A DNA stretch of 64,000 nt from Epiperipatus broadwayi. Taxonomy: Eukaryota; Animalia; Onychophora. The position numbers were made by a program, and so were the translations under genes. The stretch lies in assembly GCA_028023455.1 (NCBI GenBank), contig JAQFVV010000009.1, positions 4,030,001 to 4,094,000 on the forward strand. Reading direction: 5' to 3'. The notes under the pieces were generated by a model. The model was given only the letters and a program-made list of their open reading frames with translations, had not been told where the DNA came from and did no database searches. Positions 20,900 through 64,000 of the stretch are shown here, piece by piece (position 1 is the stretch's first letter; every line of letters begins with the position of its first letter).

Positions 20900-22330
20900 A
20901 GATATATACAATCATGACAGACAAAAAATAAATCATGGCCCTTATTCTCGGGAGGCTGTAAAGTCACCAACCAAGGCAGCAATTGGTGGCTGAAGACTGA
21001 GGGTGCTAAGAATCCCTTGATTGTGGACCCAGATGGCCATTTGATGACAACTTTTTATTTTGGTACTTACAACTGCAGGTCACTTTCAAGTGAAGGAAGA
21101 TTGCAAGAATTAGAAAGATTGTCTTATATTAAATGGGACATTATTGGACTTTATAAAGTTAGAAGAAAAGATGAAGAGACGATTTAAAAAGTGAACATGT
21201 ACTTTACTATAAAGGGACAAATATTGGAAATATAAGTGGAGTAAGATTCATTATAAATAAAAAGTGGAAAAACAATATTGTTGAGATTGATGGTGTATTG
21301 GACAGAGTGGCAAGATTAGTTATACAACTTAATAGCAGATACTAAATGCAGATGATTCAGGTTTATGCCCCAACAGGTTCTCATAGTGATGAAGTAGTAG
21401 AAGATTTTTATATAGATGTACAAAAGGCTTTTGATCAGAGTAAACAACATTTTAAAATTGTTATGGGATACTTCAATGCTAGAATTGGTTAACAAATGAA
21501 AGTGCTGTAGGTAATTTTGGTTATGGTAATAGAAATGAGAGAGGATATAGACTTGTGGAGTTTGCAGAAAAAGAAAAACTTTATATTATGAATTCTTTTT
21601 TTGAGAAAAATGTTAAAAGGAAATGGTCATGAAAGCATCTAAATGAAGGTACAGCAAAATTGGATTATATTTTGACAAACAGAAAATACATATTTCAAGA
21701 TTGTAATGTTCTTAATAAATTTAATACAGGAAATGAACATCGATTAATAAGATGTAAGACATGTTAATGCAAAACTAGAGAGTCAAAAATTATTAAGAAA
21801 ACAATATTTATAGTTGATATTCCTAATCTCCAGAAACATTCTAATGAATTTAAATTAGAACTTACAAATCGGTTTCAAGTATTAGTAGATTTTGAACATG
21901 ATTCAAGATTTGAATGAAATTAATAAGAAAATAACTGATACATTTTTAAAAGCTGGACAAAGATAGCTGGTAAAAAAAAGCAGCAATCGACCAATAAAAT
22001 TTCTACTGAGAGTAGGCAATTTATGAAGAAAAGAAGGAATATAAAGATATACAAAAATGATGCATTAAAAAGGATCGAATACCTCGAATTTTGTAAAATG
22101 GTGCGGAAAAGAATTGAAAATGATATAAGAAAGTATAACTGTGAACTAGCAAGGAAAGCTGTAGAAGAGAATAAAAGTCTCAAGAGTGTAAAACAATATT
22201 TTGGTATTGGTAGGAAATTTATATCTGCAATAAGAAAAAAAGATGGAATTATTACTAAAAAGACAGATGGCATCATGAAATGGGTAGAAGACTTCTATCA
22301 AGAATTATATAGTAATAAAGAACAAGTACC
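20900..22330 (+). mobile_element. RTE-clade LINE, 5' part (APE endonuclease and linker, no RT)
   Basis: GAKNP, GTYNCRSLSSEGRLQELE, IKWDIIGL, QVYAPT, VMGYFNARIG and DYILT motifs. The linker ORF at 22023 breaks off near 22330. Confidence 0.85.
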
Positions 22331-24050
22331 TTCTATATCTATTATATCTTCCCTCACCAATACATAATCTATTGTGTGGAATATATTATTTCTAGACCAT
22401 TGTCCTTCATAAATCTTTGATAATTTTACAATGCTCAAATTCACTCTCTGACAAAATTTCTTCAAAAGCTGTCCATTCTTATTATCTACATCATCAATTT
22501 CTTCAATATGTCCATTCATATTCCCTATAACAATTATTCTCTTCCTCTTTTCTTTAAAACTCTGTATATCCTTAACTAGGCATTCATATTTGCTACTGTT
22601 CCACTTCATTATAGTTTAAATACTACCAGCAGCTATATAAACTATAGCCACCACTCATACTTGTCTTCAACCTGATTTCAAATCACAAATGTTCTTGACA
22701 TTTAACAGTATTTAAAATTTTTTTTTTTTTTTTATATTCTTCCAGAATAGGTTCTTCTTCTTCTCTTAGATGTGTTTCCACTACTGCTAATACCTCAAGC
22801 TCTTCATTTTCAATTGATTTGTTTAATTCCAGCCATCACCTTGCATATTCAAATACCCAATTTTAACAATTTCTTCTTTCTTAACTATTCTTTTATAAAT
22901 TTTTTTTGATTCTTTCATCTCTATTACATTTATAAATAACTTGCTTACCATTAATTTTACAGACCCATTCCCTCTCCACATCCACACTTATATCTAATTC
23001 AACTACCCTTTCCTTATTTCTTCATTCCATCCATTCGTCTTCTTTTTGATAACCCTGCAATTTAAAACCCGACCCCCCTTTACAAGTTTCCCGCATTATA
23101 TTTTTTTATAAATCAGACTCCCTAAAACTTCATTTCTTTGTTTTCTTAAGTGCAATCCATCTTTACTATATAACTCATTCTTTCCAATAAATCAATCCCA
23201 CACATCCACAAACATAACATTTCTCTCACACAATTTTTTCAATCTCTCATTTATAGAACATGCCCTATCTAACAAATACCTCTTGTCGATCTTGGTAACA
23301 ATCCAACTATCCTTACTCTTTTTTACTCAAATTCCTAATCAATTTTATGTACTCATCCATTACTCTCTCTGGTGGTTCTGACAAATTATTAGTCCCTACC
23401 ATAACATACACATCTCAACTACCTTGCTTCTTTACATTATCTGTCACACCCCTAATTCTAGCTCCAAGCAAACATACTCTTACATACTTACTTCTATTTT
23501 CCCTTGTAATTATATCCCAAATACTCTAATTAGTGAATCTCCTATCAATATTGTCTCATAGTCTACTTTCTCTGCTCCATCCATAATATTTTCTACCACC
23601 TTCTGGATCTCCTTAGTTACTTCTTCCTTATCTTTCCTACTCAATAATTCCTTTATCTGCTCACACTTCATCTCTAATGATTTTAATTTTGCTTCTACAT
23701 CCTTCACCTCTTCCTTTATCTTACTTATTCTTTAGCTAACCATCTCCATTGCACTACTAATTTCTCCACCCATATCTCCTGACACTCCACTAAAACCATA
23801 CTACATTTTGCTCCCTTTCCCCTGACTTTCTCTTTAGACTATCTACACTTAGAAACCAATTTCTCGCCTCTTTTATCACCTTTAAACACTGTCCACATAA
23901 CCATAAACCTGTTACATCCTTCCTAGTCTTATTCAAACATTTCAAGTGATAAACCTCACCACAGACTGTACACTCTACCAGAGTACGCCTAGTTTCTTTC
24001 TGCCAATTATATATGCATTGCATTCACATTATGCACTGTAATGTTCTCTG
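22330..24050 (-). mobile_element. CR1/L2-type LINE, 5' part (PHD finger and SGNH esterase ORF1, APE)
   Basis: PHD finger CTVCGEVYHLKC...WLCGQC, esterase motif LIGDSLIR, APE motifs IIVIGNMNGH and TIDYVLV. PHD plus esterase ORF1 is known in CR1/L2-like elements. Confidence 0.8.
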
Positions 24051-36967: not shown

Positions 36968-38007
36968 GCCACTTTATTTTCCATTCCCCAGTCTGTTTTC
37001 CCATATTCTGCTCCATCCCATATCCACAAAATAATCTTTGTCAACTCTATGGCATACAGTAGTGCCACCAAGTGCAAGTCTTTATAATCAATGGATGCAG
37101 AAACGTTTGTGCATAAAATCTCTATCTAGTGCTTACTCAGCCACTTTATTTTCCATTCACCAGTCTGTTTCCCCATATTCTGCTCCATCCCATATCCACA
37201 AAATAATCTTTGTCAACTCTATGGCATACAGTAGTGCCACCAAGTGCAAGCCTTTATAATCAATGGATGCAGAAGTGTTTGTGCATAAAATCTCTATCTA
37301 GTGCTTACTCATCCAACATCTCCAGACTAATTTCTAGTTTGCGGCTTTCATTAACGAGGAGCCTGAATAGACCTTAGGATCTAATGCAATTCTCCAGCAG
37401 CCACCAATTATCTATTTGGTTAACTATAAAGCAGGAGTCCAAGATGAAAACACCATAATGTTTCCAACCCAAGTTCATTCGTTTATATAGTCATATATAT
37501 GTGAACTCATTTCAGCAACCATAGATTTTGGTATCTTTGGTTTTTCAAAATATCACAGGCACCATTATCCTATGAGCAGAATAGGTATTAAACCATCAAT
37601 TATCCCTAGACTAGTTTTTAATTTATGACACTGCTGCACCTTGACCTCAGAATCTAATGCAACCCTCCAGCAGCTATCTTTTACCTATTTCGTTAACTAT
37701 AAAGCTAAGAGCCCAAGATGAAAACACCATAATGTTTCCAACCCAAGCCCATTCGTTTATATAGTCATATAGATCTGAACTCATTTCAGCAACCATACAT
37801 TTTGGTGTCTTTGGTTTTTCAAAAACCACAGTCACCATTATCCTATGAGCAGAATAGATATAAAACCTTCAACTATCCCCAAACTAGTTTCCAACTTATG
37901 ACTTTCATCAGTGAGGAGCCTTGGATTTGAAAGCATTGCTTCACCTTGACCTTAGAAGCTAAAGCAATCCTCCAGCAGCTACCTTTTACCTATTTGGTTA
38001 ACTATAA
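36968..38007 (-). mobile_element. Hammerhead repeat family A, short-unit (about 280 bp) tandem array, plus a 172-bp tandem duplication
   Basis: Homologous to 49069-50287. Three hammerhead remnants (about 37320-37360, 37600-37630, 37876-37917). 36968-37139 is duplicated at 37140-37310. Confidence 0.8.
37876..37917 (-). ncRNA. Minimal type I hammerhead motif (family A), degenerate
   Basis: UCCUCA-CUGAUGA-A-AGU CAUAA GUU-G-GAAAC UA GUU/UGGGGA. Weak helix II. Confidence 0.6.
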
Positions 38008-40454: not shown

Positions 40455-40840
40455 ATAAAGCTAGGAACTCAAGATAAAAACATTGTAATATTTCCAACCC
40501 AAGCTCATTCGCTTATATGGTTAAATAAATCTTATGGTTTTTCAAAAACCGCAGTCATCATTATCCTATGGTCTGGATACGTATAAAACCATCAAAACAT
40601 CACCTGATCACTATTTCATATGATTACACATGCTGGAAGGTTACATTAGATTCTAAGATCTAGGCGCAGTGCTCTCAAATCCAAGGCTTCTCAGTGATGA
40701 CAGCCACAAGCTAGAAACTAGTCTTGGGATGTTGGACGAATAGGCACTAGATAGGGATTTTAGGCCCAAACCTTCCTGTATCCATTGATTACAAAGGCTT
40801 GCAATTATTGGCAATACTGTATGGAGAGTTTGATACTCTT
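40455..40840. mobile_element. Family A continuation (minus sense to about 40625) followed by an inverted plus-sense arm
   Basis: 40455-40625 continues the unit split at 38007. 40630-40840 is the reverse orientation and contains a hammerhead remnant. Confidence 0.75.
40688..40729 (+). ncRNA. Hammerhead motif (family A) with a C3-to-G core mutation
   Basis: UUCUCA-GUGAUGA-C-AGC CACAA GCU-A-GAAAC UA GUC/UUGGGA. Confidence 0.55.
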
Positions 40841-43169: not shown

Positions 43170-44054
43170 TTATCTATGAGGTTCCTCCTGATTTCTCTAC
43201 TTTTTCTTAAGAGCAAAATTGACAAATGGTTTCCATATCTTATGTATAATCACACTAGGATGACTTATGAGGTTATTCACTATTGTTATGTGAGTAGCTT
43301 CTTTGAATTTTCTTCTTTGTATCTTTTCACCTCTAGCCAATATTTTTGTATTTTCCCAATTGAACATATGTTCATTGGTACATAGTCTGCTATCTTAGAC
43401 AAATCTGTTTTCTCTCTTCTAATCATCAGTTTGTGTTCTTGTAATCGCTTTTCAATGGGGCGACTGATCCCACCAATACACATTCTTCCACATTCACATG
43501 GTAATTCATAGATGCAGTTTTTGCTTTTCAGCAATTCAAGTTTAGGCTTGGTTGATGTTAGAATTTCTCGTAGTGTGGTATGGCTCTGGAAAGCTGTTCT
43601 GATATTATACTGATTGCAGATTTCCCTTAACGTCTGCTATTTCTGGTATGTATAGATAGATACACTACAATTGTTTTTACTTTTGCTGCATCTTTTTGTT
43701 GTCTATTTAAGGTTTTTTTAATACCAGCTGATGGATAACCATTTTTCATAAGTTTGTTCTATGTAGATCTTTTTTCCAAATTGCAGGTTTCTGAACAATA
43801 GATTTTGCTATGAGGAAGTCTTATCACGAGAACATCTAAGAATGCCAATTTTTGTTCTTATTCAGACTCTATTGTGAATTTAATTGAAGGGGATATGTTG
43901 TTGATGTGTTTTAAAAAGTCTAGTAGTGCTTCATCATGTAGCCATAGAAGAAATGTATCATCAACATAACAAAGCCAAACTTTAGCTATGGTGAGCTCAC
44001 AGCTATTCCTTGATTTTGTTGGAAGAATTCTGTGTTATACTGAAAGTAGGTTAT
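43170..44054 (-). mobile_element. 5'-truncated Penelope-like element (RT C-terminus and GIY-YIG)
   Basis: YVDDTFL, KHINNISPSIKFTIES, LAFLDVLVIR and the GIY-YIG segment KNCIYELPCECGRMCIG...RLQEH. Confidence 0.87.
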
Positions 44055-44394
44055 CTATTGTTAGAAAAAGATTAAATGGTGATAATAGTTTATAAACCAG
44101 AACAACTCTTTCTATTGATAGTACAATAAAACTATTAACATTCTGCATAACAACCTACCTTCAATATAACACAGAATTCTTCCGACAAAATCAAGGAATC
44201 ACTATCAGCTCAACGTTGTCATTCCGGACTAGCAATATTTACATGGAAGAACTTGAAGCCATAACCATAAAGACTACTCCATATCCCAGCAAACTTTGGC
44301 TTCACTTACATATCTTGTATGGCCACATGATGGAACACTACTACAAACTTTCTGGAAACACATCAACAACATATCCCATTCAATAAAACCTACA
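44055..44394 (+). mobile_element. Inverted second arm of the same Penelope-like element
   Basis: RTTLSIDSTIKLLTFCITTYLQYNTEFFRQNQG...NIYMEELE...KLWL. 44152-44394 is the reverse complement of about 43870-44054. Confidence 0.85.
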
Positions 44395-48000: not shown

Positions 48001-49181
48001 AATCTAAATTTTGCAGTGTCACAGTACAATAACTAAATTTGCAAAGAATAGATGCAAAATTTGTATATGAATAATATTAAAATACTAAAACACACACACA
48101 TATATTAATAGATGTTTAGATGGAAATACAGTTTGTGTTTTCCATTTGTAATTAATTTATTTAGAAAGCTTTTTATTTAGGCCAGTAGCCAATAAAGGTT
48201 CAATGTTCCAGGTTAAGAGTGGAAATAAAACTGACAAGCTACTGCTAACAAAAGAACATAAATACACAACTCTTAAAGCATTTTTTTAAATTGTAGATGT
48301 ACATGTATTTATACTATTTACATATTATAATATAAATAATAATTGATACAATAGTGAATAATTTTTTGGTTATTTTGTTCTAAACATATACATTTTTTCC
48401 TCATAATGTTAAGCAAGTGGGAACTTCCCATTTTCAAAAGGAATGAGGAAGAGGTTAAAGTTATTGTTATATTTTGTTCCTTTATCATGAAATAATTTTT
48501 TTCAGATTTGATTATTAGAAATGAGACTAATTCACTTAGATTAAATATTAATTAATAAGTCAGCAGGAAATATACATTTGGTATAAAAAATCATATGCAT
48601 TGTATGAAATTAAGTGCTAACTTTGTATTTGTCATATTATCATTTTTTCTGAATTTTCTTATTTTTTCATTTATTAGTTAATTTCATTAAATAATTATTA
48701 AAAACAATCAATTTCTGAAATTATTTTTTTGTTGTTGATGTCTTTATTCCTCCAGTTATCTATTCTGTAAATTAGTAGTATGTGTGACCGATTTCATCAC
48801 AGAATTGTGCTTCAATAGATTTGTTGGTTATCCTTGTAAACTTGTTTATCATAAAATAGATTAAATTTATACCTATGTATTTTCTCAAGTTCACAATCAC
48901 TGTCCCTAGGCTCTTGCAATCTCAAGATAGTTTCAAGCATAAGTGTTTACAACATCTAGGTATAATAATAAAAAAGCAAGTCATATATAACATGACATTA
49001 CTTTTATAAGTTTGTATTTACAAAAATGTAATACAGAGTGTACCAATAGCTCAAACAAGCTCTTAATTAAAACAGGCAAAACTCACTATATATATTTTGC
49101 CACACACAGCAAACTAAAGTAATCAATGGATGCCAGAAGGCTTGTGCATAAAATCCCCATCTAGTGCGTACTCATCCGATA

Positions 49182-49223
49182 TCCCCAGATTAGTTTCTGG
49201 CTTATGGTCTTCATCAGTGAGAA
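49182..49223 (-). ncRNA. Minimal type I hammerhead motif (family A) with a helix III mismatch
   Basis: UUCUCA-CUGAUGA-AGACCAUAAGCCA-GAAAC UA AUC/UGGGGA. Confidence 0.6.
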
Positions 49224-49633
49224 GCCTTGGATCTGAGAGCACTTCATCTAGATCTTAGGATCTAGTGCAATCCTCCAGCAACCACCTCTTATCTCCATTT
49301 AACTACAAACCTATGAGTCTTAAACTGAAAACATCTTAATGTTTTCAATCCAAGCCCATTAGCTTATATAGTCATATGAATCTGAACCCAGTTCAGTACC
49401 TATACATTTTGGTATCTTTGGTTCTATAATAACCATAGCCATCATTATCCTATTAGGCAAGATTGGTTTTAAGCCAACAAACATCACATGACCACCTCCT
49501 CTTATGCTTGTGTATAGTTGTTAAAACAGGCAAAACTCACTATATATTTTGCCACACACAGTAAGCTAGAGTAATCAATGAATGCCAAAAGGCTTGTGCA
49601 TAAAATCTCCAGCTAGTGCCTACTCATCCAATA

Positions 49634-49675
49634 TTTCCAAACTAGTTTCTGGCTTATGACCTTCGTCAGTGAGGA
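49634..49675 (-). ncRNA. Minimal type I hammerhead motif (family A) forming the palindrome loop
   Basis: UCCUCA-CUGACGA-A-GGU CAUAA GCC-A-GAAAC UA GUU/UGGAAA. Helix I is partly mismatched. Confidence 0.65.
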
Positions 49676-50079
49676 GTAGGCACTAGATGGGGATTTTATG
49701 CACAAGCCTTCTGGTATCCATTGATTACTCTAGCTTGCTGTGTGTGGCAAAATATATATATAGAGAGAGTTTTGCCTGTTTTAACAACAGCTATACACAA
49801 GCATGAGAGGAGGTGGTCATGTGATGTTTATTGGCTTAAAACCAATCCTGCCTAATAGGATAGTGGTGGTTATGGTTATTATAGAACCAAAGATACCAAA
49901 ATGTATGGGTACTGAACTGGGTTCAGACTCATATGACTATATAAGCTAATGGGCTTGGATTGAAAACATTAAGATGTTTTCAGTTTAAGACTCATAGTTT
50001 TGTAATTAAATGAAGAGGTGGTTGCTGGAGAGTTGCATTAGATCCTAAGATCTAGATGCAGTGCTCTCAGATCCAAGGC

Positions 50080-50121
50080 TCCTCACTGATGAAGGCCATA
50101 AGCCAGAAACTAGTCTGGGGA
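50080..50121 (+). ncRNA. Minimal type I hammerhead ribozyme, best-preserved copy (predicted cleavage after 50115)
   Basis: Helix I UCCUCA/UGGGGA (6 bp, one G-U), core CUGAUGA, helix II GGC-CAUAA-GCC, GAAA, palindromic helix III ACUAGU and a GUC triplet. Confidence 0.8.
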
Positions 50122-51118
50122 TATTGCATGAGTAGGCACTAGATGGAGATTTTATGCACAAGACTTCTGGCATCCATTGATTATTCTAGCTTGCTGTGTG
50201 TGGCAAAATATATATAGCAAATTTTGCCTGTTTCAACAACATATACACAAGCATAAGAGGAGGTGGTCGTGTGATGTTTATTGGCTTAAGCTCTTAATTG
50301 ATAAGTGTGGTAAGTGAAAACATTTAAAATCTCTATCTGGAACATTCTATCTCCAGACCAATTGGTTTTGAGCTAGAATATTCAGACACTAGATCTAAAA
50401 TATCAATTCAAAACCCAGCATTTATTTCATATGTAATATTTAAGTAGAAACTCTGAAATTTTCGGACATGAAAATGTCTTTTACTCCAGCGATCTAACTT
50501 AAATAGCTATATGGGACTGAACCAAATTCAGATCTACTATATATTAATAGCCTCAGCATAGACAAAGCCTTAAAGGTAAAATTATAATAATAATAATAAA
50601 AAAGCAAGTCATATATAACGTGACCTTACTTTTATAAGCTTGTATTTACAAAAATGTAATACAGAGAACATACCAATAGCTCAAACAAGCACTTAATTGA
50701 AAGGTGCAGTAAGAGAAAAAATTTAAAATCTCTATCCAGAATATTCCTATCTCCAGACCAATTCCTATCTCTAAACCAATTGGCCTGGAGATAGGAATGT
50801 TCTGGATAGATTTTAAATGTTTTCTCTTACCACTTATCAATTAAGAGCTTGTTTGAGCTATTGCTATGTTCTCTGTATTACATGCTTTATTATTATTATT
50901 ATTATTATAATTTTATCTTTAAGGCTTTGGCTATGCCGAAGCTATTAATATATGGTAGATCTGAATTTGCTTCAATCCTATATAGCTATTTAAGTTAGAT
51001 AGCTGGAGTAAAAGACATTTTCATGTCTGAAAACTTCAGTTTTTACTTAAATATTACGTATGAAATAAGTGCTGGGTTTTGAGTTGTTATTTTAGATCTA
51101 GTGTCTGAATATTCTAGT

Positions 51119-51163
51119 TCTTCACTGAGGTGAGCCATAATCTTGAAACAATTGGTCTGGAGA
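51119..51163 (+). ncRNA. Minimal type I hammerhead motif (family B)
   Basis: Helix I UCUUCA/UGGAGA, core CUGAGG(U) with A9 apparently lost, helix II GAG/CUU, GAAAC AAUUG GUC. Helix III reads ACCAAUUGGU in the other copy. Confidence 0.65.
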
Positions 51164-51989
51164 TAGGAATATTCTGAATATAGATTTTAAATGTTTTCTC
51201 TTACCGCACTTATCAATTAAGAGCTTGTTTGAGCGCTCCCTGTATAGGTATGAATATGTATGTGTGAACCATTTAGAAAATTCTCTAGATGGTGCAAAGA
51301 TAAAAATTACCATTAAAGTCCAATCACTTATTTTAGAGATTTAACTTTATATAGTATATTCATAATATATGGCCAGAGCAGTGAAGATGATCAGCATGTA
51401 TCAGAATCCCAGCATTTTTATATTTATTATAATAAATATTTTAGCAACCATTTATGTGTATATGCATGTTCAGATAAAATTTTGATGATTATTTTTTTTA
51501 TAACATACCCTAAGTTTGGCATTGGCTAAATGATAACTAGTCTCAGATTTTGTCACTTTAAACCAGTCACAAAGGATGATTGATAAATACCACTGGTAAT
51601 GCTATATTATTAGGCTGTGTTTATAACATATATTGTTTAGTATTTATTTATTGTTTGCTTATCTATTCTCATGCTCAGTGCTATATTTGGATTTATATGG
51701 CGCCAATAAATGATAATTTCAATCTTCCTATATATATCCTATTTCCATACTGTTACAATTTAGTAATAAAATGATTTAAGATTTAGAATAGTGATTCTTA
51801 ATATTTTCAGAATCACTGAACACAATTTTAGAAGACTTTTGCAGAAGAGTCATAAAATAAAACGGTAGATATATTTTTTATATTGCATAATATATTAAAA
51901 ATCACATACATAACAGTTTACATATCAGACAATAGCAAACAAAAATCAGTAAATGAAATTTAAAAAAAAAAAAATTGTCACAATTTTTT

Positions 51990-54163
51990 AATGGGATATT
52001 TGGACCTGATGACTTACAAATTCTTCAATATCTGGTCATATGTGTGAAATAGCTTCTTGCATTTCCTTTTCTATATTTGTCAGCCTTTCACATCTTTGTC
52101 TTAATATTTGTTAATGTTGAAAAACCAAGCTTGCATAAATTTGATGATGAAAATTGTAATAAAATTTGAATTGGTTTTCCAGAAATAGTTTTAAACTCAG
52201 TTTAAACAGAAATCCAAAATTTTTCAACTGTTGATAACATAATGAATTCTGACTCTTCTTGTAATAAAAACTTGATGTGATGACTGTAGAAAATGGATTT
52301 CGTATCCAATCATAATTTTTGATATTGAATGTGGAAAAGTATTTCACATTTTTTTGTTCTAATAATGCTAAAAATAGTGTTATAATAGGAATTATTTCAT
52401 TGATATTGTTATTTTGGACTGAAGGAAACATGTCTACTGTCCTTTTTTGAGTTATGCGCATTCTCCAAAGTGATATTTTTTTTTGAAATGCTGACAGTTT
52501 GTCAGTGGATGTTAGAATATTTTCATTTTTATCTTGCATATCAGTATTCAAGTTATTTAAATAATTGAAGATATCAGCTAAATATGCTATTTTAATATAC
52601 AAAATATTGTTTGTAAGAAAAGTTTTAAAAATATTGTTCCCTTCATTTTGAAAAAACATTGACAATTCATCCGAGTTCCAAAATTTGGTTCAGTACTTTA
52701 TCTTGTGATAATGACCTTATCTCAGTATGTAAAAGTTAAGATTCGTCCTGAGCTTCCATAGATGCACAAAGTTTTTAAATAGACATATTTGTAAGGGTCA
52801 TGATTTGATGTAAGTTTACCATATTTACAATTTGATCTAATACAAATTTTAATGTAGTAGGTAATGTTTACGAGACAAATGATTCTCAGTGTAAATAACA
52901 GTGGGTAAATATATTAGAATTTTTCTTTTTCATAAAAGCCATAAATCCTTTAACAAAATCAACCATTGAAGGAGCACCATCAGTACAGTTTCTTACATAG
53001 TGGTTACATGTTATGTCAAATTTATCTAAATATGATGAGTCAAAAATATCATGTCCTGTTGTGTGTTCAGTAAATTGTCTGCAGCATAAAAATTGATTCA
53101 CTATTTTGTTTTCATCAATAAAATGAATACATCCTAGTGCGTGAGTTGTACCGCTGGTATCATTGTATCATCCGTATGAAAAATTTTCATTTCTTTTTTT
53201 GCATCATCACCAAACATAATTTGAACTATTTCAGAACCTGCTGGTATAATCAGATGCTCTGCTACAGTGTGATTTTAAATTTTTAGCAATTATTTTGGAA
53301 AACTATATGATACAATTTGTACTTTATTAGATATTGTAATTATTTTTTTAAATTTTTTTCTTTGATTAATTTAATTATTCAAACAATCTTTGAATAATAA
53401 TTATTGTCTTTGGACTGAAGATTGGCATGTTTGGATGTAAAATGATGTTTTAATTTTGCTGGTATTATTGTACTATTACAAAGTTTTTCCCCACAAATGA
53501 CACAAAGGGAAATATGACATTCATTTTTGTCAATATAAGTGAGTATTGTCTACTGATTTTTTTTATTTTGTTCTCCCTATTGTATCATTATTGATATTGC
53601 TTGCACTTGCACTATCAGTGCCAGAATTTTTTTTTTTTCCTCATGTGTCACAGCATCGGCCGGGAAGCAAACCCGCTAACCCAGGATAACTACCTGCAAA
53701 GCAGCTGCTTTGACCTCTCAACCACCAATGCTTGACCAGAATCATATTTTTGTTTTAGAAATTTGTACATTTTGCATTTCTAATAATTATTTTTAATTCT
53801 TTGGAGAATAATTAGAGGTATTTTACTTTCTAGAAGACCAATTTGTCACAAATGAACATTTACCTACAATTACACACCCACTGACAATCTATCTAAAAAG
53901 TTGGACTTACTTGAAAAAAAAAAAAATAATAATAACAGTAATCTTTTTAACAAGAAACATGGTTGTTATGATTCAACTGTTTGCACACATTTCCATCCAC
54001 ATGCAAAAACGAAACAATGGCTTTTGCTTTATCGTTTTTGTTTCTTTTATTCATCTTAATAACCGTTTTAATTTTTTACTGATTTTCAAATTTTGGCAGA
54101 ACACTTTCTCTAAGTTCATGGAGCATCAGTGTTCCACAGAACACCAGTTAAAAATGTCTGATT
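51990..54163 (-). mobile_element. Decayed Buster-type (ZBED5/SCAND3-like) hAT transposon
   Basis: IAYLADIFNYLNNLN...DWIRNPF, CTDGAPSM...THCYLH and PDIEEFVSHQVQISH*. Buster-like 5' end cagacatttttaactggtgttctgtggaacac at about 54132-54163. Confidence 0.85.
53628..53735 (-). mobile_element. tRNA-Gly-like short SINE inserted in the Buster element
   Basis: gcattggtgg...gggtttgcttcccggccgatgc followed by gacacatga and poly(A). Candidate 7-bp TSD ccagaat (53621-53627, 53736-53742). Confidence 0.6.
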
Positions 54164-55499: not shown

Positions 55500-56200
55500 A
55501 TTATTATATATATTATATCACAAGTAACTCAAACTCACAAACTTGCAGCCCTCTCAGTATTTCTTTTTAGAAACTATTCATCATGCAAATATGAAGCTGA
55601 TATGAGAGATAATCTAATACATCATATAGATGATCTCGTCAAAATAAGACATAAAACAACAATTATCAATAAAAAAGTTAAACTATTTTTCTATAAAATA
55701 AATCATCAACAACAGAAAGCAAACAACCCAAGCATCCTTATTCCATATATCCACTCACTATCCAAACAAATTAATAAACTTTCCAATGAATTTGAAATTG
55801 CCTTTCATTCACTTCCCTCCACTAACAGATTAATAAATAATACTTAAGAAAAAATAAGACCTGAATTAACTCCTCATGTTGTATATAAAATTGCATGCCG
55901 CCACAATAATTGCCAAGCCTCATATTATGGTGAAACCAAGGCAAATATTGTAACTAGATTATCTCAGCACAAATATTTATATAATAGGACAAAAACAAAA
56001 GCACAGAGTAATTCGGTATTTGCAGAACATGAAAAAACTACTGGCCACATTTTTCAACCATTAGTAGCAAGTATTGTTTGTACAGAGAGAAATGATACAA
56101 AAAAAAAAAGATCAAAGAAGCTTGCTACATAGCAAGCAATCTTATAGCAATTAATCGAAGAGAAGCTTGCTTTTTCATTTCAAGAAAATGGAATTTGTGA
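55500..56200 (+). mobile_element. Penelope-like element 3' fragment (GIY-YIG endonuclease)
   Basis: HKLAALSVFLFR, LIPYIHSLSKQI, PHVVYKIACRHNNCQASYYGETK...RLSQHK...SVFAEHEKTTGHIF. Confidence 0.85.
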
Positions 56201-63700: not shown

Positions 63701-63774
63701 TTTATTTTTAATTATAGTTTTGTTTTCCAGTTAAATTTTTAATTATTTTAGAAGCTTATAATTTTGTGTATAAG

Positions 63775-64000
63775 ATCTTTGGATCTAATGCAACTCTCCA
63801 GCAGCCACTTTTTACCTTTTTAATTAACTGTAAACTGCGAGTCCAAACTGAAAACACATTAAATGTTTTCAATCCAAGCTCCAAGTTCATTCACTTGTAT
63901 GATTTTACAGATCTGGACCCAGTTCAGTATCTATACATTTTAATGTCTTTGTTTCTTAATAATTGCAATCACTATTATCTTTTGGTCAGGATTAGTTTAA
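63775..64000 (-). mobile_element. Further family A fragment, cut by the window end
   Basis: gatctaatgcaactctccagcagccac...aatgttttcaatccaag...cccagttcagtatctatacatttt matches about 49255-49470. Confidence 0.75.

Follow-up and report, generated by a model that had tools for sequence, protein, structure and literature searches.

In a 64,000-nt window of the velvet worm Epiperipatus broadwayi (contig JAQFVV010000009.1, positions 4,030,001 to 4,094,000), we find two families of repeat units without an open reading frame (ORF), here called A and B, each forming a head-to-head pair around a hammerhead ribozyme motif, with the A pair lying inside the B pair. Both families are likely non-autonomous Penelope-like elements (PLEs) of the animal retrozyme type, with ORF-less units of 420-460 nt. 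They belong to a known kind of element, not to a new kind, and are filed here as PLE derivatives, not as PLEs proper, as an ORF for reverse transcriptase (RT) and GIY-YIG endonuclease is absent from them.

The span from 48.6 to 51.6 kb of the window was read directly and with a repeat finder; the assembly comprises 5.6 Gb at ~28% GC. Family A has a period of 452 nt, and its head-to-head pair occupies 49067-50289, with arms of ~1.33 units that are 91-95% complementary and that are out of phase by the length of the tail present at one end only. A 12-bp target site duplication (TSD), AAGCTCTTAATT, brackets the whole A pair, which must therefore have entered in a single event. The B pair occupies 48962-51234 and holds the A pair within its left arm. 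Read in this way, the locus bears out the initial annotation, which had described two non-coding repeat units, each head to head, with the A palindrome in one arm of the B palindrome. The unit sizes proposed there, 452 bp for A and about 400 bp for B, stand in the case of A; for B, the unit measures 399 nt in the window copy but ~419 nt elsewhere in the genome. At 50356-50369, the left-arm copy of B in the window lacks ~24 nt, the ribozyme core among them. At the B fold-back, the arms start at unit positions 414 and 403 of 419, both within the 3' part of the B hammerhead. The 3' ends of the A arms lie at +125 (short) and +180 (long) from the ribozyme cut, and those of the B arms at ~+165-168 (long) and +77 (short), so that a short end is combined with a long one in each pair. 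An 80-nt probe laid over the B|A junction gave a full match at the window locus only, and matched by half at the others, among the 40 of 632 candidates that were scored. The uniqueness of the junction among these, together with the TSD, indicates that the nesting is one ordinary insertion, of an A pair into the left arm of a B pair that was already there, rather than a composite that recurs. The nesting, previously listed as unexplained, is accounted for in this way.

The same architecture recurs across the genome. A first look gave 3,409 candidate loci for A and 3,221 for B, from which the 30 best loci per family were sampled, yielding 29 independent loci each (58 composites). An antisense arm followed by a sense arm, which we write as ‘-+’, was seen at 22 of 29 A loci and at 23-24 of 29 B loci, the remainder being single arms; no pair in the reverse ‘+-’ order occurred among the 29 A and 29 B loci, and there were no long tandem arrays among the 58. 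Arm length ranges from 0.1 to 2.7 units, and many arms carry two ribozymes one unit apart, as does the left A arm in the window, where they are 452 nt apart. Exact TSDs of at least 9 nt surround the whole composite at 11/29 A and 13/29 B loci, compared with 4/145 and 5/145 at decoy boundaries. No PLE coding sequence was found within any of the 58 composites, and such sequence was present in the flanks of only two; there is likewise no ORF of at least 90 amino acids in 48.9-51.3 kb of the window. With more than 3,000 candidates per family, these results sustain the description of A and B as ORF-less, high-copy units, speak against their being pseudo-long terminal repeats (pLTRs) always attached to coding PLEs, and give head-to-head layouts, not tandem arrays, as the prevailing form in the sample. 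In short contigs (~100 nt) from four sequencing runs, the ribozyme region is 5-10x deeper than the rest of A. Small shares of 48900-51300 are also present in runs of several other organisms, presumably as a conserved ribozyme module, and this module may be common to related species.

The outer ends of the arms are fixed at two sites in each family. The 3' termini of A fall at ~+124 (...CCUGUUUUAA) or ~+180 (...UUGGCUUAA) from the ribozyme cut, within ~5 nt, and those of B at +71-116 or +164-174. Read from the sequence, the A termini fall in the loops of two small hairpins that each hold UUAA (CUGUU-UUAAC-AACAG and UUGG-CUUAAAA-CCAA). One short end is paired with one long end in all 15 classifiable A pairs and in 20 of 21 B pairs; the sole exception, in B, combines two short ends, and no pair combines two long ones. 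Given the roughly equal use of both sites in single arms, the probability of 15/15 is ~3e-5. The inner ends vary between loci yet are enriched near the ribozyme, with 24 of 42 in A and 22 of 40 in B falling within -42 to +84, where 27-30% would be expected. Equal arm length was considered as a rule, as might be produced by snap-back copying (610/615 in the window pair, 716/718 at locus L004), and was rejected, as other loci have very unequal arms.

These are traits that the literature treats as specific to PLE insertions, which are described as partial tandems in which a 5'-truncated inverted copy often lies on the 5' side and only one end carries a tail of 30-40 bp (PMC8557442, Craig et al. 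2021). In families A and B, the partial tandem has a 5'-truncated copy in inverted orientation next to it, the 3' ends fall at either of two internal sites with the tail on one side, and TSDs flank the composite, all of which supports the earlier suggestion that they are mobilised by PLE RT/GIY-YIG machinery. The fold-back form, previously regarded as unexplained, is the usual outcome of PLE insertion and was seen at 22-24 of ~29 loci per family.

Coding PLEs of the same genome have this architecture as well. The PLE relics reported from the window are borne out as GIY-YIG pieces at 43289-43636, which matches the ends of PLE ORFs, and at 55848-56129 (Pfam E 3e-4, under the cutoff); the relic families have 84,000-104,000 first-look candidates, and their endonuclease is C-terminal. 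Copies of one coding family, PLE-2, terminate ~130-200 nt past the stop codon at either of two sites separated by 30-40 nt, and all three independent head-to-head PLE-2 loci (L079/L082, L080 and L081) have the antisense arm before the sense arm and pair a short end with a long one. The second family, PLE-1, is represented by many copies that share 98-99% protein identity, hold unbroken 817-amino-acid frames and often stand in tandem at a spacing of 2,847 bp or in facing pairs. It is a very young and probably active Penelope family. Its protein identity of 98-99%, set against copy likeness of ~92% in A and ~86% in B, makes PLE-1 much younger than either. The 3' untranslated region (UTR) of PLE-1 (L063:1990-2150, G000:C13188) holds a tRNA-like stretch, GGCUCAGUUGGUUAGAGCG...GGUUCGAAUCCC, and after it a hammerhead-like motif, CUGAAGA...GAAAC, with a weak helix I; this module is unlike that of A and B. 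The architecture and its recurrence, the TSDs, the conserved hammerhead fold described below and the presence of the same architecture in coding PLEs are all direct observations.

A purified PLE protein cuts and extends both DNA strands and begins reverse transcription at two internal positions, the distance between which equals the tail (PMC11167929, Frangieh et al. 2024). By analogy, a Penelope RT/GIY-YIG enzyme, supplied in trans, would make a staggered double-strand cut at which the 3'-OH on each side primes reverse transcription. Within the RNA, synthesis would begin downstream of the ribozyme, at either of two fixed sites (for A, ~+124 or ~+180), and the two cDNAs, copied from templates longer than one unit, would run to variable 5' points and be joined head to head. 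The product would be an antisense arm, a sense arm, a tail of 55-65 nt at one end only, and a target duplication around the whole. In this scheme, the enzyme is inferred, as are priming from both ends and the kind of RNA that served as template. The fold-back form would be explained by such a process, because two-ended PLE priming on an ORF-less ribozyme RNA is expected to yield head-to-head pairs.

The hammerhead motif itself is best preserved in A at 50078-50124. Here, UCCUCA pairs with UGGGGA over 6 bp to give helix I, the core reads CUGAUGA, and helix II (GGC/GCC beside an A/A mismatch) is closed by the loop CAUAA and followed by GAAAC and then by the palindrome ACUAGU, which forms helix III. 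All conserved core bases (C3 U4 G5 A6 N7 G8 A9 ... G12 A13 A14 A15.1 ... U16.1 H17) are present in this copy, and the two minus-strand copies in the window are point-mutated. The genome-wide B motif has a CUGAGGU or CUGAUGU core, helix II GAGC/GCUC with the loop CAUAA, then GAAAC and ACCAAUUGGU. Position 9 of the B core is thus not A; in the family-wide reading it is U in all subfamilies, so that the conserved core is incomplete. In most metazoan type I hammerheads, helix I has 6 bp, helix II has 4 bp and helix III is a short palindrome, and the published descriptor for the dimer-type motif specifies helix I of ~6 bp, helix II of ~4 bp, and helix III of 1-2 bp with a small palindromic loop (PMC4209133, Cervera and de la Pena). 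The geometry of the A and B motifs agrees with that descriptor, helix III being ACUAGU in A and ACCAAUUGGU in B.

That each unit carries a type I hammerhead, as first proposed, is supported by a pattern scan, which gave 41 matches where 12.9 were expected, and by conservation of the helices. In an alignment of 55 copies of the motif, taken from A, B and a small number of further families, 88% of cells were paired, compared with 21-44% when the 3' partner was slid; by helix, pairing was 95.7% for I, 75% for II and 92% for III. Compensatory changes were seen at two pairs (CG/UA in helix I and GC/AU in helix II). As these represent few independent events, the covariation is supportive rather than strong. 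In cofolding, the lowest-energy predicted dimer of the A motif is a double hammerhead in which helix III forms in trans over 6 bp. The bases A6-U7-G8 of the A ribozyme form an AUG that opens a 17-codon frame (window 50086-50139), with the ribozyme cut 27 nt downstream; this geometry is like that of the PAc element, whose ORF starts inside the ribozyme, and may be a vestige of the start of a parental ORF. In the scan of the sequence examined, no ATG-started frame of at least 80 amino acids was found at or just after any hammerhead-like motif.

The two families had been called unrelated, a claim that has to be withdrawn: they align over a common module of ~210 nt that ends in and includes the hammerhead, with 62% identity (E 4e-9). 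They are two distantly related families in which the conserved module carries the ribozyme. A related family, A', is present in the window at 37085-37991 (-), 40631-40792 (+) and 63773-63998 (-). It has the ribozyme module of A to ~+70 and then diverges (GGUGGCACUACUGUAUGG...). The A' copies at 37-41 kb face each other across ~2.6 kb of unrelated sequence, and loose ends of contigs point to a higher abundance of A' than of A.

Several points weigh against the assignment to non-autonomous PLEs with hammerhead ribozymes. The sampled loci are the best full-unit matches, so the head-to-head fraction may be biased. In a BLAST comparison with 24 loci of the two coding families sampled, no similarity was seen between A or B and the 3' regions of PLE-1 or PLE-2, with the sole exception of a B-like fragment that adjoins one PLE-2 copy, and neither of those two families yielded an autonomous PLE whose module from ribozyme to tail resembles that of A or B. 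The A/A mismatch at 10.1/11.1 in the A motif and the U at position 9 in B make cleavage activity uncertain. Finally, no Rfam hammerhead model matched, whether at the gathering score on the window or at E<=10 on 48.8-51.4 kb (2.6 kb) and on an 81-nt slice. Covariance models and covariation were both named in the initial annotation as checks on the motif: the Rfam models fail, and helix pairing with compensatory changes gives support that falls short of strong. We weigh the Rfam result lightly because published searches for such motifs used descriptors and not covariance models, and we treat the motif as a candidate dimer-type type I hammerhead.

The alternative that deserves most weight concerns the template. 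In the classical retrozyme cycle, two hammerhead cuts and ligation would give a covalently closed circular monomer, and an RT running round the circle would produce arms longer than one unit. Arms of 1.1-2.7 units that begin at an internal start site, and the many arms with two ribozymes one unit apart, are what such a circle would give; the A monomer folds better than its shuffles (z -4.1), and circular RNAs of such size are documented for animal retrozymes (PMC7229834). However, the B monomer shows no unusual degree of structure (z -1.2), and ribozyme cleavage is not required for PLE insertion in vitro (PMC11167929). The clustering of inner ends at the ribozyme fits an endless circle less well than a linear template that has its end, or meets a block, at that point. 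We consider the circular template possible, though the less probable choice. A different enzyme is conceivable in the form of an RT of the long interspersed nuclear element (LINE) type, with an apurinic endonuclease, which would mobilise A and B by twin priming as in L1 inversions. Twin priming also produces inverted 5' segments, and the window does contain a LINE relic (Exo_endo_phos_2 at 22301-22615), but A and B have no poly(A) or simple-repeat tail, their 3' ends are internal to the repeating unit and paired as short and long, coding PLE-2 copies show the same pairing and the same ‘-+’ order, and the hammerhead module is typical of PLEs (PMC4209133). Such an origin is very unlikely.

It is highly unlikely, too, that A and B are immobile leftovers, that is, pLTRs of coding PLEs whose ORF was lost by deletion or recombination. 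They do resemble pLTR-plus-ribozyme modules, and PLE relics are common nearby, but thousands of copies share the same unit and termini, each composite has its own TSD, and none of the 58 loci has a coding remnant between or inside the arms. The idea of solo pLTRs is likewise rejected, on the TSDs and on the absence of ORF remnants at these loci. Palindromes are also a known artefact of long reads, and chimeric palindromic reads or template switching during replication could in principle generate a fold-back. Here, the arms are no more than 91-95% complementary and are offset by the tail length, a 12-bp TSD surrounds the A pair, and more than 40 independent loci share the architecture, each with an inner junction of its own, which makes an artefact of assembly or a DNA-level event exceedingly improbable.

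Mobilisation of A and B by a PLE enzyme leaves one regularity to be explained, as priming that proceeded independently at the two ends does not account for the strict short/long pairing. One asymmetric dimeric particle might perform the integration, with the two template RNAs held antiparallel through a trans (double) hammerhead, in which case the main job of the motif would be template dimerisation for two-ended priming and not cleavage. This is a speculative and rather improbable proposal, made because the short/long pairing is nearly obligatory and because the fold-back junctions cluster at the ribozyme.

In the retrozyme literature, animal hammerhead repeats appear as tandem arrays for which Penelope enzymes are only proposed mobilisers, and in the Penelope literature, inverted and tailed insertions are described mostly for coding copies. 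A complete Penelope signature on ORF-less hammerhead elements, at dozens of independent loci, gives direct structural support for the link between PLEs and retrozymes. The data also set two constraints on any model of Penelope integration, namely that the order is always antisense then sense, and that one short end is nearly always combined with one long end. For annotation, they explain why such loci resemble nested palindromes and are easily taken for artefacts.

Table 1. Features of the nested A and B pairs and of the PLE relics around them (window positions; S and L, short and long 3' site; distances given with a plus sign are from the ribozyme cut).
Feature	Position	Strand	Remarks
Family B left arm, distal piece	48962..49066	-	~+58 to +168 from B ribozyme cut; long (L) 3' terminus at 48962
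TSD copy 1 of A insertion, AAGCTCTTAATT	49057..49068	.	
Family A antisense-oriented left arm	49067..49676	-	~1.32 units; short (S) 3' site +125 at 49067; inner end within hammerhead
A hammerhead copy	49179..49225	-	Point changes in helix II and helix III
A hammerhead copy, fold-back centre	49631..49677	-	U at position 17; helix I weakened
Family A sense-oriented right arm	49674..50289	+	~1.33 units; inner end +16; long (L) 3' site +180 at 50289
A hammerhead, intact	50078..50124	+	Cut after C50115
TSD copy 2 of A insertion, AAGCTCTTAATT	50288..50299	.	
Family B left arm, proximal piece	50288..50763	-	Ribozyme core deleted ~50356-50369
B fold-back centre	50764..50777	.	Arms begin at unit positions 414 and 403 of 419
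Family B right arm	50778..51234	+	~1.1 units; short (S) terminus +77
B hammerhead copy, sole one left in window	51117..51166	+	CUGAGGU core; helix II GAG/CUU; helix III minus one base; worn
GIY-YIG relic, coding family PLE-1 (context)	43289..43636	-	No Pfam match; 68-86% identical to C-terminal ends of PLE ORFs genome-wide
RT-like piece (context)	44096-44383		Recognised by eye only; PLE-like per protein atlas comparison of the RT piece
GIY-YIG relic, coding family PLE-2 (context)	55848..56129	+	Pfam PF01541 E 3e-4, 21.4 bits, below curated cutoff 22.6

Elsewhere in the window, a tRNA gene or tRNA-derived repeat at 53652-53731 (-) gave the only Rfam match at gathering score (35.4 bits). The LINE-type endonuclease fragment at 22301-22615 lies on the minus strand (Exo_endo_phos_2, E 3e-6), and a PHD-finger-like open frame is found at 23793-24023 (-) with E 6e-6.

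Among known systems, the inversions of L1 offer a parallel from outside the PLEs. In the twin priming reportedly described by Ostertag and Kazazian in 2001, both cut ends prime cDNA and an inverted 5' segment results, as would be the case here; L1 inversions are said to differ in having a poly(A) end and one mRNA as their source, and in being a minority outcome. A close likeness is to the non-LTR retrozymes of metazoans (PMC7229834, Cervera and de la Pena 2020), for which PLEs have been proposed as mobilisers. Like A and B, these are ORF-less, AT-rich elements of a few hundred nt that have TSDs of more than 4 bp and co-exist with PLEs, and they carry a type I hammerhead in which helix I measures 6 bp, helix II 4 bp, and helix III is palindromic and short. 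They are described as multi-copy tandem arrays that yield circular RNAs, with inverted layouts unmentioned, whereas A and B are mostly head to head with arms of 0.1-2.7 units. An origin of retrozymes from the pLTRs of PLEs has been argued on phylogenetic grounds in a 2026 preprint (bioRxiv 10.64898/2026.07.22.740005).

The PLEs themselves (PMC8557442) differ from A and B in having an RT/GIY-YIG ORF and a tail of 30-40 nt, as do the coding PLE-2 copies of this genome (30-40 nt), compared with no ORF and a tail of 55-65 nt in A and B. With PAc Poseidon (PMC11167929), our elements share AT-rich targets and, by the proposed mechanism, two internal RT start sites downstream of the ribozyme that define the tail; both DNA strands are cut and extended by PAc, as would also be the case here. 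In A, as in PAc, an AUG lies in the ribozyme core with the cut ~26-27 nt downstream. The start sites of PAc lie in an AC-rich stem-loop, while those of A, as read from the sequence, lie in the loops of two small UUAA hairpins, and the choice of start site is equal between strands for PAc in vitro, whereas nearly every A or B pair combines one short and one long end. Lastly, the non-autonomous elements of the Chlamys group, such as MRC1 (PMC8557442), are algal, have no canonical hammerheads and share 3'-end similarity with a known autonomous family, which for A and B was not found in the two families compared; like A and B, they are PLE derivatives that form pLTRs and multicopy insertions.

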